Below, piece after piece: positions 18,052 to 49,000 of a DNA stretch of 51,300 nt. Position 1 is the first letter of the stretch; every line of letters starts with the position of its first letter. The DNA is from Octopus sinensis. Its lineage: Eukaryota. The notes under the pieces were generated by a model. It searched no databases and was not told the origin of the DNA. It worked only from the letters and a program-made list of their open reading frames with translations. The stretch is from the NCBI RefSeq assembly GCF_006345805.1, contig NW_021834169.1, forward strand, positions 1-51,300. The letters are read 5' to 3'. The position numbers and the translations under genes were made by a program.

Positions 18052-18610
18052 TTCCTACTCTAGGCACAATGCCCGAAATTTTGGGGAAGGAAGGACCAGT
18101 CGATTAGTTCGACCGTAATACGCGACTGGAACTTAATTTATCGACCCCGAAAGGATGAAAGACAAAGTCGACCTCGGCGGAATTTGAACTCAGAACGTAA
18201 CGGCAGACGAAATAGGGCTAAACATAGAGGGGACAAACAAGGACAGACAAAGGGATTAAGTCGATTATATCGACCTCAGTGCGTAACTGGTACTTATTTA
18301 ATCGACCCCGAAAGGATGAAAGGCAAAGTCGATTTCGGCGGAATTTGAACTCAGAACGTAACGGCAGACGAAATACCTATTTCTTTACTACCCACATGGG
18401 GCTAAACATAGAGGGGACAAACAAGGACAGACAAACGGATTAAATCTATTATATCGTTCACAGTGCGTAACTGGTACTTAATTTATTGACCCCGAAAGGA
18501 TGAAAGGCAAAGTCGACCTCGTCGGAATTTGAACTCGAAACATAAAGACAGACGAAATACCGCTAAGCATTTCGCCCGATGTGCTAACGTTTCTGCCTGC
18601 TCGCCACCTT
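18052..18610 (-). mobile_element. Family-B SINE trimer
   Basis: Three bodies; junctions at ~18214 (deleted variant) and 18376 (gacgaaatac|ctatttc); one head. Confidence 0.92.
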
Positions 18611-18955
18611 ACTCCAACTTATATTTAGCAAACATAATACTCACGAATATTACAATAATATTCTCCATCTATCAACCAGTCAATATAGTTAAACAGAACT
18701 ATGTTAGCAGTTTTATAATTATATTAAGCATCTTATCAATCCAGATATGTAACAGCAAACGTTGCGCATTTAAGGCGTTATATAATGTAATGAAGGAATA
18801 TAAATGGAATGTGAACGCGCATAAACTGAGCTGTCCATTTCTCACCGCGCTTTTCCTATTGTAAACCTTGTGTCAAAGTGAAACACTCCTTATGTATTTA
18901 CAGCGGCCGGCAATAAATCTTTCGTTTGGAGTTCATACTAAGCGGAGTAAAACAT

Positions 18956-19393
18956 TACTCTTTTACTCTTTACTCTTTTACTTGTTTCAGTCATTTGACT
19001 GCGGCCATGCTGGAGCACCGCCTTTAGTCGAGCAAGTCGACCCCGGGACTTATTCTTTGTAAGCCCAGTACTTATTCTATCGGTCCTCTTTTGCCGAACC
19101 GCTAAGTGACGGGGACGTAAACACACTAGCATCGGTTGTCAAGCAATGCTAGGGGGACAAACACACACAAACACACACACACACACCACAATATATATTA
19201 TATATATATAATATATACATACATATATACGACAGGCTTCTTTCAGTTTCCGTCTACCAAATCCACTCACAAGGCATTGGTCGGCCCGGGGCTATAGCAA
19301 AAGACACTTGCCCAAGATGCCACTCTGTGGGACTGAACCCGGAGCCATGTGGTTGGTTAGCAAGCTACTTACCACACAGCCACTCCTGCGCCT
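18956..19393 (-). mobile_element. SINE family A, full length, young subfamily
   Basis: Near-identical to the copies at 23121, 32595 and 44683; tail (TTTACTC)n. Confidence 0.95.
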
Positions 19394-19501
19394 GAAATAC
19401 ATTGATGAAATACATTGACACTCAAACGATATTACGGCAAAGTGTGAGCCAACGATTATGTCCCTCCTAAATATTTTCTTAGTTTTGTAAAATTTTTAAT
19501 G

Positions 19502-19941
19502 TCTTTAGTCTTTTTAGTCTTTTACTTGTTTCAGTCATTTGACTGCGGCCATGCTGTATCACTGCCTTTAGTCGAGCAAATCGACCCCCAAGATCTATTC
19601 GTTGTAAGCCTAGTACTTATTCTATCGGTCTCTTTTTTGCCGAACCGCTAAGTTACGGGGACGTAAACACACCAGCATCGGTTGTCGAGCGATGTTGGGA
19701 GGACAAACACACAAACACAGACACACAAACATATACACACACATACACACACACATATATATATATATATATATATATATATATTATATATACGACGGGC
19801 TTCTTTCAGTTTCTGTCTACCAAATCCACTGACAAGGCTTTAATCGGCCCGAGGCTATAGTAGTAGACACTTGCGCAAAGTGCCACGCAGAACCATGTGG
19901 TTGGTAAGCAAGCTACTTACCACACCGCCACTTCTGCGCCT
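19502..19941 (-). mobile_element. SINE family A, near full length, older subfamily
   Basis: Full colinear match with a small deletion in the head. Confidence 0.92.
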
Positions 19942-20204
19942 GTCATTTTTGTCATTTTTTTTCTATAATCATTCGCTCATCTGACCCCAAAATCAGATTG
20001 CATTATATACAATCTTCGTTAGCCCCTTGTGGATAATAAAAAATCAGTTTTATAAACTCACCAACACTACCAAGTCACTTATTAAGGCACAACTGAATTA
20101 CTCTGAGTAAAGCGATTTTTGTCCTTAGGTTACAGCTGTTATTTCCTGTTTGCTTAACCCCACAAATGTTTCCCTCAAACTTTGCTTCTTTTACATTTTT
20201 TCCA

Positions 20205-20350
20205 ACCCCAAAGAATCAATGTCAACACATGGCTATGATGCTCCCGCCACAACTCCTGCTCATGATCAGAGATACACATATTACCAGCCATTAAGGTTAT
20301 GGTTGAGCAACTGTTATGCAAATTTGTGGTATTGAGCAGAATATTTGCTA
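20205..20350 (-). mobile_element. SINE fragment (family F), possibly carrying a Nin/Deu-like central domain
   Basis: catggctatgatgctccc..tgatcagagat..gtggtattgagcagaatatttgct resembles an octopus SINE I recall; single copy here. Confidence 0.45.
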
Positions 20351-21054
20351 TTACGATATTTCTGCTTCAGCAACTCAGCGCTGAATCTGTCTGAAATGTA
20401 ATGGGAAATAGGTAAAACAAAAAAAAAAAAAGGAACAAAGTTTGCAGGGAATAGTAGTCATTTTCTTAGATAGAAGCAAATAGGATATAACACTAACTGA
20501 CCAAAGACAAGAGTAAATATTTTATTTTGTTATACAGTGTTATTCATAATAAGAAACGAAACACGGTTTGATAAACTAAAACTTAAGCAATTCTGATAAA
20601 ATATATATAAGTATCTTTATTATTCTATAAAGATTGGATTTTATTTTAATGATAAACAAAAATAAAATATATAACTGGTTTTAAGAATTACGTCTATAAA
20701 ATTTAAAGAAAAATTTATAACCAAGTTTTGTGTATATTATGAAGAATAATAACTCTTAATGTAATATGCAAATGTTTTAACCATTTCTTTCATTTAAATT
20801 GTGTTCTAATCGATAAATTTAAAGTGTTTTGTAGACATTTATCTGTTGTTCCTAAAAGCAATATGTAATATGTAAAGATATTATTATGAAATTAAATGTA
20901 AATAAATGTATGAGAAAATATAGCTATTAGACGGCGTCGGACTGAAATTATTAAAATATGAAGAATTACTGGAGAGTAATTGGAGTCGAAACAGGTAGGA
21001 ATTTAAAATGTGGTTGGAGATGTTCTAGAATAATAGGATCTTAGATATTGGTTT

Positions 21055-46424: not shown

Positions 46425-46575
46425 TGGTGATTTCAAATGTAGCACACAAGACTAGCAGTTTAGAGGGAGGATATGTCAATTAAAGTCGCCTCAGTAATTA
46501 CCTAGTACATATTTTATCGATCCCAAAGGATAAAACTCAAAGTCAACCGCGGCGAAATTTAAACTCAGAACAACT
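46425..46575 (-). mobile_element. SINE family B, diverged
   Basis: tttatcgatccc..aaagtcaaccgcggcgaaatttaaactcagaac. Confidence 0.7.
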
Positions 46576-46807
46576 TCAGGGTGGAAAGATCAGCAACTAA
46601 ACTTCGAAGTGTAAGTTCAAATCATTTGAGCACGACTACGTGTTTTTCTATAGTATATTGAGCATCTCCGGACTTCATCTGTTGACTATCTATCTCTCTT
46701 CGTGTGTGTATGTATGCATGCATGTATGTGTAATATATATGTATGTATGTGTAATATATATATATATATATATATAATATATATATATATCCAGACATAC
46801 ATACATA

Positions 46808-47001
46808 CGAGTCCGTCCCAAAAATGTATACACACCTTTAGGAAAGGAAATCTGTATAAATATTTACTTGTATAAGTACCTCTATAAATATAGAAATCTC
46901 TTTCGATGTTTTATCAAATTGCAATAACATTGACTTTAAAATATTTATGCGGATTTTTCTTTTCTGAAGTGTGTATACATTTTTTTGTTTTTGGCAGACC
47001 A
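46808..47001. mobile_element. Degenerate Tc1/mariner-type MITE, ~190 bp
   Basis: Inverted ends aaaaatgtatacacac..ttag / tgaagtgtgtatacattttt; TA at the left end. Confidence 0.55.
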
Positions 47002-47047
47002 TATATATATATGTATATATATATATATATTAATAATAATAATAATC

Positions 47048-47485
47048 TTACTACAGGCACAAGGCCTGAAATTGGGGAGAGGAGATAGTCGATTACATCG
47101 ATCCCAGTATTCAACTGGTACTTAATTTATCGATTCCTAAAGGATGAAAATCAAAGTCGCCCTCGGCGGAATTTGAACTCAGGACGTAGCAGCAGATGAA
47201 ATACCAGCAGATTCTGCCAGCTCGCCGCCTTAATAAAATAATAAGTAAATGATGATGATAATAATAATAATTCTATTATAGGCACAAGGCCTGAAATTTG
47301 GGGAGAGGGGTTTTTTTTTCGATTACATTAACCCCAGTCTTTCACTGGTACTTAATTTATCGACCCCGAAAGGATGAAAGGCAAAGTCGATCACGGCGGA
47401 GTTTGATCTCAGAATGTATCGACGGGCGAAATACAGCTCAGTATTTCGTACAGCGAGCTAACAATTCTTGCAGCTCGCCGCCTTA
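47048..47485 (-). mobile_element. Two family-B SINEs (older tail type)
   Basis: aggcacaaggcctgaaatt tails; heads end gctcgccgccttaa. Confidence 0.88.
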
Positions 47486-48289
47486 ATAATAATAATGATA
47501 ATAATAATAATAATAATAAAGCCAATTCTTCTCAGTGGTGAAGTATTCCAAGAGCAACTCCCTATCAACAGCTCAACATTGTTTTGCAGTGAACACCTTC
47601 CTTTAATTAATATCTGAATCAAGCTGGGTTCAGATGCTAGTGTTAAGGCATTGAGACTCCCCGATTCCTGTTATAGAGATGGCCTGAAGCTAAAAAGCTG
47701 CAGATAATATCAATGAAGACGCTAGGGAAATTAGGAGAAAATTCCGTTTGGAAACTGCACTAACGTTACCTTGAAAAGCGCTAAATTAATTTTCAAAAGT
47801 AAAAAAATACTGCCCTATTTCTTATTTAATATTTAGTCTCATCGTAAATGATAAATAAGTAAAGTTCCATTTCTAGTCATATACCCATATAAGGACCATT
47901 TTCTCCGGTTTTTGTGGTGTATATATTTCCCCCTTAGAGGGGACTGAAGTAACGTAAAACGAAGTGAAGAACTTAACGTGTCATTCGGTTAAGGAATCGA
48001 AAGCAGAATCTTACGATCTTGGGTCCAACACGCAAACCACTAAACCACGCGCATCCATATGATAAGTACTCACTGGAAAACATAATGTCCACCATTTTGA
48101 AACCGTCTCACGACCTGCTAGAAATAGCACCCCGAATCACACTATATCATGTTGAAGATTATAGCATTGAATAATGTAGACCGGAGTACTTGTTATGAAA
48201 GCAACGGCAGGCTAATCGTGGTTAAAATATCTTTGAGTAATAGCTCTAATGGTTCTGGATTGACCCGGGGCTCAGCACCAACAATAATG

Positions 48290-49000
48290 TTTTCTACTCT
48301 AGACACAATGCCCGAAATTTTGGAGGAGGAAGCCAGTCGACCCCAGTACGCAACTGGTACTTAATTTATCGACCTCGAAAGGATGAAAGGCAAAGTCGAC
48401 CTCGGTGCAATAATGCAGGTACAACATTAATTTTCCAGACACTGATAGCCAGAGACTCTTCTAATCTGTATTAAGTTACTTGTGTTCCATTGTATTATTT
48501 GAGTAAATTCTCTTCGACTAAAGACACAAGGTCTGAAATTTGGGAGGAGGGAACTAGTCGATCACATCGACCCTAGTGTTTCACTGGTACTTGATTTGAT
48601 TTATCCACTCCTAAATGATGAATGGTAAAGTCAACCGCGGCGGAATTTAAAATCAGAACGTAGAGTCAGACGAAATACCTATTTCTTTACTAACCGCAAG
48701 GGTCTAAACACAGAGGGGACAAACAAGGACAGACAAACGGATTAAATTGATTACATCGACTCCAGTGCGTAACTGGTACTTATTTAATCGACTCCGAAAG
48801 GATGAAAGGCAAAGTCGACCTCGGCGGAATTTGAACTCAGAACGTAGCGGCAGACGAAACACCTATTTCTTTACTACCCACAAGGGTCTAAACACAGAGG
48901 GGATAAACAAGGACAGACAAACGGATTAGGTCGATTACATCGACCCCTGTGCGTAACTGGTGCTTAATTTATCGACCCCGAAAGGATGAAAGGCAAAGTC
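48290..49000 (-). mobile_element. Family-B fragment plus trimer (48520-49000)
   Basis: Junctions gacgaaatac|ctatttc at 48678 and gacgaaacac|ctatttc at 48862. Confidence 0.92.

Follow-up and report, generated by a model that had tools for sequence, protein, structure and literature searches.

In a 51,300-nucleotide stretch of Octopus sinensis DNA (contig NW_021834169.1 of assembly GCF_006345805.1; hereafter the window), members of a short interspersed element (SINE) family, here called B, are joined by their tails to one particular base in the head of other SINE units. Seven of the nine joins recorded lie at this base, position 50 of an element of about 235 nt, and such a coincidence at one nucleotide cannot be due to chance. 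Target-site duplications (TSDs) support, in a small sample, a landing or priming preference for GGTA(T/C). The reading that we favour, tentatively, is that the arrays arose by stepwise insertion into resident copies, the 5' end of each newcomer being joined by homology; template switching by the reverse transcriptase, or retrocopying of a read-through multimeric RNA, accounts for them nearly as well. All statistics refer to this one 51-kb window, and A and B elements are read in the sense orientation. Position 1 is the first A of AAGG, which puts the join at positions 50-52; a slash in a sequence marks a join or insertion point.

The window is AT-rich and dense in microsatellites and short retroposons. 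A full B copy (about 235 nt, minus strand) consists of a polymerase III-type head (AAGGCGGCGAGCTGGCAGAAACGTTAGCACGCCGGGCGAAATGCTTAGCGGTATTTCGTCTGCCG..), a centre (..GACTTTGCCTTTCATCCTTTCGGGGTCGATAAATTAAGTACCAGT..) and a tail (..GTTTAGCCCCTTGTGGGTAGTAAAGAAATAG). The tail is a 3' hairpin of the type found in long interspersed elements (LINEs), GCCC-CTTGT-GGGT followed by AGTAAAGAAATAG, and the tail module ends in ..CCCYTGTGGRTARTAAARAAAYAG. A second, more varied group, A, has head and centre in common with B and ends in ..TTTCAGGCCTTGTGCCTATAGTAGAA(ATT)n or in the variant ..TTTCGGGCATTGTGCC... With a B copy as query, BLAST gave 39 alignments in the 51 kb, corresponding to 10 B units plus A-type copies and fragments; with TSDs of 15 and 16 bp, these are short, multicopy, TSD-flanked elements, as expected of SINEs. 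Box-like motifs are visible in the head (TGGCAGAA.. and GAGTTCAAATTCC); ARAGORN called no tRNA in the window, SINE heads included, and a search of 17.9-28.5 kb against Rfam (E<=1) gave no tRNA match. RNA folding (-38.4 kcal/mol, z = -2.2) predicts a 13-bp head hairpin in which positions 33-45 are paired to 50-62 and UAGC forms the loop, and the join position corresponds to the first bases of the 3' arm of this hairpin. The central 45 nt (positions 95-139) are found again in at least 120 JGI metagenome contigs otherwise unlike B, and thus represent a conserved SINE core domain present also in non-cephalopod host DNA. The centre of the A and B SINEs may be the Deu central domain. The main octopus SINE classes have been described as tRNA-Deu and tRNA-Core (PMC8967140).

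The joins occur at four arrays and at one locus where an old A copy is split by a full B copy. The features are as follows.

18.05-18.61 kb, minus strand: 18-kb array, in the order B, B, A
18376..18610, minus strand: unit 1, full-length B, running from head AAGGTGGCGAGC.. to tail ..GTAGTAAAGAAATAG and sharing 90% identity with the 24-kb solo B
18215..18377, minus strand: unit 2, B from position 50 (GGTATTTCG), tail cut at ..GTTTAGCCC
18049..18216, minus strand: unit 3, A-type from TATTTCG, tail ..TTTCGGGCATTGTGCCTAGAGTAGGAAAGT, CpGs of the shared region all intact
18611..18624 (ATATAAGTTGGAGT) and 18035-18048 (ATGTAAGCTGGAGT), minus strand: direct repeat around the whole 18-kb array, 14 bp with 2 mismatches
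21.05-21.51 kb, minus strand: 21-kb locus, old A copy split by a full B
21213..21447, minus strand: nested full-length B, preceded by 4 extra bases (TGTT, 21448-21451)
21452..21467, minus strand: 5' TSD of the nested insertion, GGTATTTCGTCCGTCT, equal to old A positions 50-65; the old head continues to 21513
21199..21214, minus strand: 3' TSD of the nested insertion, GGTATTTCCTCCGTCT; the old A copy runs to about 21050
27.72-28.32 kb, minus strand: 28-kb array, in the order B, B, A
28095..28320, minus strand: unit 1, B with head
27911..28096, minus strand: unit 2, B from position 50, tail variant GGGCAATAAAGAAATAG
27717..27912, minus strand: unit 3, A-type joined at about position 20 (AAATAG/GAATCGTTAGC), tail ..CCAGGACTTGTGCCTTTACTAGAAAAAG followed by ATT repeats
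35.30-35.72 kb, minus strand: 35-kb array, B then B
35483..35716, minus strand: unit 1, B with head
35303..35484, minus strand: unit 2, B from position 50, tail ..GGGCAATAAAGAAT with a (GGCA)/(GATA) microsatellite at its end
48.51-49.00 kb, minus strand: 48-kb array, in the order 5'-truncated B, B, A
48862..49000, minus strand: unit 1, B truncated at about position 100, next to ATT-rich non-SINE DNA and lacking an old head
48678..48863, minus strand: unit 2, B from position 50 (here GGTGTTTCG)
48506..48679, minus strand: unit 3, diverged A-type from position 50, tail ..CAGACCTTGTGTCTTTAGTCGAAGAGAATT

Six junctions are clean, the B tail (..GTAGTAAAGAAATAG) meeting one base of another SINE unit (/GTATTTCG), and all six lie where the sequence-only reading of this DNA had placed them. 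Four (18376, 21213, 28095 and 48678) read ..GTAGTAAAGAAATAG/GTATTTC followed by G or C, with the tail also written ..AAAGAAATAG; that at 35483 has a slightly different tail (..GTAGTAAAAAATAG/GTATTTCG; tail ..AAAAAATAG), and that at 48862 an altered target base (..AAATAG/GTGTTTCG). In a seventh junction, at 18215/18216, a B tail cut at ..GTTTAGCCC is followed by TATTTCG, again at the same place. The remaining two of the nine joins fall elsewhere: at 27911 the alternative junction proposed previously is present (AAATAG/GAATCG), at about position 20 of the A unit, and a join at about position 128 was found in a contig from outside the window (L001, described below). That the outermost unit carries a different tail type also holds, four of the five loci ending in an A-type unit. 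The accompanying suggestion that these outer units are older is not supported, the A unit of the 18-kb array keeping every CpG of the shared region.

The motif at the join (GGTATTTCG) is found on every well-kept A- or B-type copy, and each of the 13 GGTATTTC sites in the window falls at SINE position 50. Ten B units are present, and seven of them are joined by their tails to position 50, against none of the window's A-type copies; the specificity is therefore a property of the B tail and not of the downstream unit, which argues against causes sited only in the downstream RNA. A GGGTAGT/GGTTAGT tail type is common to all position-50 junctions. A cut or modified base in the anticodon-like loop was considered as the cause and rejected, since A-tailed RNAs were never joined there and a proven chromosomal insertion uses the same base.

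Several features were noted around these loci. All B-bearing loci (18, 21, 24, 28, 35 and 48 kb) are on the minus strand, with A copies on both; the orientation may be biased, perhaps because the loci share a transcription unit. Two partial head pieces (about positions 14-29; GGCAGAAACGTTAGCA and GGCAAGCAACGTTAGC) immediately precede the complete head of the 35-kb array (35717-35748, minus strand); they abut a (GGCA)n microsatellite with GGCAG microhomology and look like repeated template jumps or the remains of an older head. The 48-kb array lies in a dense repeat pile-up: a 5'-truncated A copy of the TTTCGGGCATTGTG subtype lies about 95 bp from its 3' end (48300-48411, minus strand), and an oppositely oriented head of a third SINE type (GAACGCGCATGGCTCAGTGGTTAGAGCG..) lies about 40 bp from its 5' end (49040-49100, plus strand).

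Head-to-tail units of this kind could be the product of local tandem duplication or unequal crossing-over after a single-copy insertion, and Tandem Repeats Finder does report periods of 183-184 bp with about two copies at four loci. The sequence-only reading had held such duplication to be insufficient, and had expected it to leave units more alike within arrays than between them, with no TSDs. Over the shared part of the B units, from position 50 onward, the distance is 10.4% within arrays and 9.5% between arrays. Local duplication is rejected on this basis, since units of one array are no more alike than units of different arrays, and it is further opposed by the outer units belonging to a different tail family and by the use of one breakpoint at five loci together with a TSD-flanked nested case; we consider it very improbable.

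Descent of all multimers from one multimeric master with shared diagnostic bases is likewise not supported by the sequences. The closest B pair (4.3%) is formed by the first units of the 35-kb and 48-kb arrays, and rank averages, taken by hand from the distance matrix, are 9.1% for first against first, 10.5% for second against second and 10.4% for first against second across arrays. No bases mark first or second units: the B variant GATTAAATAAG (TAAATAAG) stands first in one array and second in two others. The outer A units are of different subtypes and are joined to B in three different ways (AGCCC/TATTTCG, AAATAG/GAATCG and AAATAG/GTATTTCG); at least the B-to-A joins therefore arose more than once.

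Evidence for chromosomal insertion comes from TSDs. Beyond the 21-kb locus, the relevant features are as follows.

24078..24306, minus strand: solo B in unique DNA, with a perfect 15-bp TSD, AGGTATAATATGAAG (24307-24321 and 24063-24077)
37742..37829, minus strand: LINE-like 3' fragment, 5'-truncated, tail ..CGCCCCTGGTGGGTAATAAAAAAAACAG, inside an antisense A copy, with a 15-bp TSD, GGTACTTATT(C/T)TATC (37830-37844 and 37727-37741)
19941..20045, plus strand: another LINE-like 3' fragment bearing the tail module (..TTAGCCCCTTGTGGATAATAAAAAATCAG/TTTTAT), the 5' boundary falling within this range, no clear TSD
31454..31500, minus strand: short B-like 3' piece (..GCAGCCCTGTTTGGCTAATAAAGAAAC) within an (ATCT)n microsatellite

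Clear TSDs of 15-16 bp are present on three insertions of elements bearing the tail module: the nested B at 21.2 kb, the solo B at 24.1 kb and the LINE-like fragment at 37.7 kb. Scored against 300 random placements, each of the three was matched by none (0/300). The previously described nested copy that splits an older one at 21.2-21.5 kb is real, with a TSD of 16 bp and 1 mismatch (GGTATTTCGTCCGTCT and GGTATTTCCTCCGTCT) and the old head kept upstream, as is the independent insertion at 24078. Host split and TSD at both ends, the usual marks of nested target-primed reverse transcription (TPRT), are seen for the 21-kb B copy and the 37.7-kb LINE-like fragment. They are not seen at the six or seven headless junctions, which have neither a TSD nor a second head. 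Around whole arrays, TSD-like repeats reach p = 0.03 at 18 kb (14 bp, 2 mismatches) and are not significant at 28, 35 and 48 kb.

In 3/3 TSD-verified cases the duplicated stretch begins with GGTAT, GGTAT or GGTAC, the boundary being ambiguous by one to three bases (AG/G), as most tails end in ..YAG(G). Among six classifiable 3' ends of tail-bearing elements, three have the GGTAY start (Y, T or C); the others read ..AATCAG/TTTTAT (20045), ..GAAAC/ATATCT (31454, in a microsatellite) and ..AAAGAAT/GAAGGCAGG (35303). Given 132 GGTAY sites on both strands of the window, the chance of three in six is p = 4e-8, or 5e-6 if five positions of slack are allowed. Since insertions also occur outside SINEs (24 kb, 35.3 kb), this is a preference and not a strict specificity. 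Position 50 is a real chromosomal target, because a TSD-flanked B is nested exactly there in an old A copy. Of the earlier proposal, the GGTAT preference thus stands, widened to GGTA(T/C) and joined by a LINE-like fragment that had not been listed; the claim that the family is its own preferred landing pad hangs on whether the headless joins are insertions at the DNA level.

We tentatively favour the possibility that they are. In this mechanism, tail-bearing elements would insert by TPRT, favouring targets with GGTA(T/C) at the start of the duplicated stretch, owing to a nicking preference of the partner LINE, to base pairing between the nicked target and the terminal ..AGG of the RNA, or to both; the partner LINE would be expected to end in ..TTAGCCCCTTGTGGRTAATAAAAAAWCAG. 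Resident SINE copies would be frequent targets because well-kept copies carry the motif at position 50, and, with the nick at the GGTAT of a resident copy, B units would stack there in the same orientation. Where the target is similar, its 15-16-nt overhang (positions 50-65) would anneal to the internal stretch of the new cDNA and prime the second strand, so that the head of the new copy is lost, no TSD is visible and a one-headed, head-to-tail array results. Where the overhang is mismatched, a full copy would enter with a normal TSD and the old head would be left behind, as at 21 kb. There, the old overhang (..TCCGTCT) and the incoming B (..CCTGCCG) differ at 4 of the last 7 bases, the 3' end included; if closure is by homology, this is the only two-headed locus because its target overhang had diverged. 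Annealing of a target end inside the cDNA is the 5' closure proposed in the double-TPRT, or microhomology, model (PMC2912911), to which the 5' template switching onto a homologous target suggested by the sequence-only reading is close, and plausible. Both the chromosomal nature of the headless joins and the mode of their 5' closure are inferred.

Stepwise insertion is supported by the proven chromosomal insertion at the same base and by the occurrence of the GGTAY motif at a LINE-like fragment that is not B. The A units of the 28-kb and 48-kb arrays have also lost more CpGs than the B units on them, which supports it weakly, the A subfamilies being different. The flanking repeat of the whole 18-kb array counts for this mechanism and for template switching alike.

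A number of observations weigh against stepwise insertion. Three TSD-verified events from one window are at hand, and neither a TSD nor an empty-site allele is seen at any of the headless junctions, none of which is thus proven to be a separate chromosomal event. Neighbouring units are no more alike at positions 50-65 than unrelated copies are, and the parts of an array look equally old: unit 1 and unit 2 are 5.4% and 6.3% from the consensus, so that the 5' side is not shown to be younger, and the head and tail sides of unit 1 differ from it by 7.5% and 7.3%. These three comparisons had no power or showed no difference. The 48-kb array begins with a B truncated at about position 100 next to ATT-rich DNA, without an old head, for which nesting needs an extra deletion; the arrangement points to one event, in which a multimer was copied or templates were switched. 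Finally, if the headless joins were separate chromosomal insertions, seven of nine GGTAY events would be at position 50, which has 14 of the 132 sites (p = 4e-6, about 50-fold over-use), with one event only at the 19 antisense GGTAC sites within SINEs, a 7:1 ratio. Such over-use would require a determinant beyond the 5-mer, for instance the hairpin, homology, or a longer motif such as GGTATTT. It vanishes if the headless joins are not chromosomal: of the three classical GGTAY insertions one is at position 50, close to the number expected from the site counts.

B might also be a self-homing SINE. RNA of a copy sitting at position 50 of another SINE, read through the tail into the next unit, would carry a 3' extension (GGUAUUUCG...) homologous to every SINE head, which could pair with nicked copies and guide insertion to that site. 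Such self-homing we regard as unlikely.

The equal age of the array parts and the lack of chromosomal over-use to explain are both accommodated if each array is one insertion with one TSD. On reaching position 50, a reverse transcriptase that had started at the 3' end of an A or B RNA would switch to a B RNA at its 3' terminus, or, through homology, to a read-through B RNA in which the junction is already present, and may do so repeatedly before integration ends. One head, full 3' tails upstream and 5'-truncated units downstream are the anatomy of a template-jump chimera, and LINE-type reverse transcriptases do jump templates and can yield head-to-tail products (PMC11371274). The single repeat around the 18-kb array (p = 0.03), the block-like truncation of the 48-kb array without an old head, the partial head pieces upstream of the 35-kb array, which resemble repeated jumps, and the joins at about position 20 (27911) and about position 128 (L001) fit this explanation, as does the retention of all CpGs by the 18-kb A unit. 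Apart from the off-site joins, these observations, like the equal age of the parts, lean towards inheritance through a multimeric RNA as well. Published jumps, however, begin at the end of a fully copied template (PMC11371274), whereas 7/9 joins here are at one internal base. The 3'-partner break points are accordingly not scattered. In template-switch chimeras, truncation points vary. The same base is used by the proven 21-kb insertion and GGTAY is common to other TSD-flanked insertions, so that either a coincidence or one primer-end preference behind both is required; pairing between the nascent cDNA end and the B tail is limited to 2 nt (GG), and A-tailed RNAs were never the acceptor. Template switching in one step is a somewhat less likely account of the arrays than stepwise insertion.

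The joins could also be inherited through RNA, having been made once or a few times, with multimers then transcribed and retrocopied via the tail of the last unit, or recombining. Read-through is possible, as neither the B consensus nor the 18-kb array has a sense run of four T. Three arrays end in an A-type tail, two of them (28 and 48 kb) beside ATT-rich DNA, the usual A-type target; truncation of the 48-kb array as a block and the tail type common to all position-50 junctions also agree with inheritance. The different A subtypes, the three B-to-A junctions and the occurrence of the TAAATAAG subtype at both ranks, with no unit-1/unit-2 signature across arrays, speak against it, as does the 21-kb junction, which is new and not copied, because it formed against the old copy's own diverged sequence. 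As the sole cause, RNA inheritance is improbable. Under stepwise insertion, some arrays may still be read-through copies of arrays first built by nesting.

A, B and LINE-like tails have in common a 4-bp stem with a CTTGT loop (e.g. 18379-18407, 47265-47297 and 37744-37771), C-G pairs of the stem being flipped to G-C when the A type is compared with the B/LINE-like type. With windows trimmed by hand and in effect only two or three lineages, 91.5% of cells are paired and the covariation score was reached by 0/500 shuffles; the automatic alignment placed the A and B loops out of register and recovered no structure. The stem-loop is a likely LINE recognition hairpin, and its occurrence in both groups hints that A and B use related partner LINEs. 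The tail module is also present on the two short non-SINE 3' fragments, and no LINE body with a B-type 3' end was found in the window. An element at 40158-40790 (plus strand) has a 210-residue C-terminal frame, with only a sub-threshold match to DUF6451 itself and with relatives that carry a reverse-transcriptase domain (PF00078), and its DNA continues into a short stretch that ends in (AC)n. A protein search gave 249 matches, with relatives 70-88% identical in ENA metagenome assemblies, and three long contigs carrying such relatives (L002-L004) contain no A or B SINE, so that they do not stem from a genome of this type. Since it does not carry the B tail, this element was rejected as the partner of B.

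Outside the window, the reading frame that spans a SINE junction, used as a protein query, found one protein, on a 543-bp ENA metagenome contig (L001), where a B-like copy runs into the 3' part of an A copy, the join being at about position 128. Neither this search nor that with the reverse-transcriptase frame recovered a protein that the window itself encodes, and the source genome is therefore probably absent from the database. An exact junction scan of JGI metagenomes gave no match.

The A copies end in (ATT)n and also follow (ATT)n (46980-47560, minus strand; 13000-13460, plus strand; 41871-42034, minus strand), so that the RNA 3' end and the target tend to match. Two full A copies stand in tandem with only ATT repeats between them, and the arrangement suggests ATT tails of earlier copies as landing sites for new A copies. 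One A copy (47030-47236, minus strand) has an internal deletion in its head (about positions 24-47), the deletion stopping a few bases short of the same GGTATTTC site (..GGCAGAATCTGCTGGTATTTCATC). A second abundant SINE family has a different head (..GGTTCCGGGTTCAGTCCCAC..), a CORE-like centre (..CTTTGGGCAAGTGTCT..) and a TA-rich repeat end; it probably belongs to the tRNA-Core/OR2-like class named in PMC4758252 and PMC8967140. Its copies, and an unrelated repeat, are located as follows.

579-684, 1529-1692, 7954-8112, 19223-19394, 19780-19960, 23359-23529, 32835-33005, 40971-41157 (minus strand) and 44921-45091: copies of the second SINE family
43058-43548, plus strand: 51-54-bp tandem repeat of about 9 copies with a histidine-rich translation (..LLYNQHHHQRSHHHHHH..), in the open frame 42871-43617, for whose repeat no Pfam match was obtained

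The behaviour of B is a combination of known parts: target preference, nested SINEs, site-specific LINEs, 5' closure by homology and template-switch chimeras. Alu copies land in the A-rich tails or linkers of older Alus. As in that system, resident copies of the element's own kind serve B as targets that carry the sequence preferred by the LINE machinery, and the 21-kb case is a classic split host with TSD. However, the spot used by B is a GGTAT at the loop edge of a hairpin in a polymerase III-type head and not an A-rich tail, and most B joins have no TSD or second head and form regular head-to-tail arrays of about 184 bp. L1 has the target preference TT/AAAA. In the RTE clade the target signature is Tn-TA (PMC13295347). 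The B preference resembles these in being a short motif at the first TSD base, common to SINE and LINE-like fragments with the same 3' end, and differs from them in its sequence, GGTA(T/C), based on three TSDs.

Site-specific LINEs such as R2, in 28S genes, and Dong, in (TAA)n repeats, have RNAs that pair with the target. Recurrent insertion at one multicopy sequence recalls these elements, as do the A-type SINEs of the window, which end and sit in (ATT)n; in contrast to R2 and Dong, the B preference is not strict and the multicopy target is the retroposon family itself. U6-L1 chimeras are retrocopies formed by template switching. Further chimeras and composite SINEs include HaSE3 (PMC3272025), module exchange among mollusc SINEs (PMC4758252) and the products of R2 template jumping (PMC11371274). 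The B arrays share with them a 5' partner that is complete at its 3' end, a 5'-truncated 3' partner and the possibility of one TSD enclosing all; they differ in a truncation point fixed in 7/9, in partners from the same or sister families and in joins that recur and have founded no single new family. Dimeric and trimeric SINEs with a fixed master (Alu, Twin, and tRNA dimers and trimers, cited in PMC4758252) likewise have several units head to tail behind one promoter, whereas B arrays lack a unit-specific signature and vary in unit number and in the last unit. With double TPRT (PMC2912911) the headless joins would have in common that the insert is 5'-truncated and that homology to the overhang of the target fixes the break point, but in B the homology would be the whole 15-16-nt overhang and the truncation would be seamless and always at the same place.

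The octopus-repeat literature searched contained nothing on SINE multimers, on these sequences or on SINE self-insertion, and in the literature searched no description was found of the GGTA(T/C) preference or of a SINE joined repeatedly at one head-hairpin base of its relatives. SINEs are a major component of octopus genomes, with 11.6% in O. vulgaris (PMC13282606), and the literature searched gave no description of insertion rules for octopus SINEs. The GGTA(T/C) preference would be a handle on the partner LINE and its nicking specificity, and the fixed site is a natural test of whether 5' closure depends on target homology or on template switching. One-headed stacks would be a source of error in repeat annotation, copy counting and the dating of elements. 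It is tempting to consider what self-homing, if true, would mean for the family: target choice would be inherited through the RNA, and arrays would grow and could seed satellite-like repeats, providing a simple route from a dispersed SINE to a tandem repeat.

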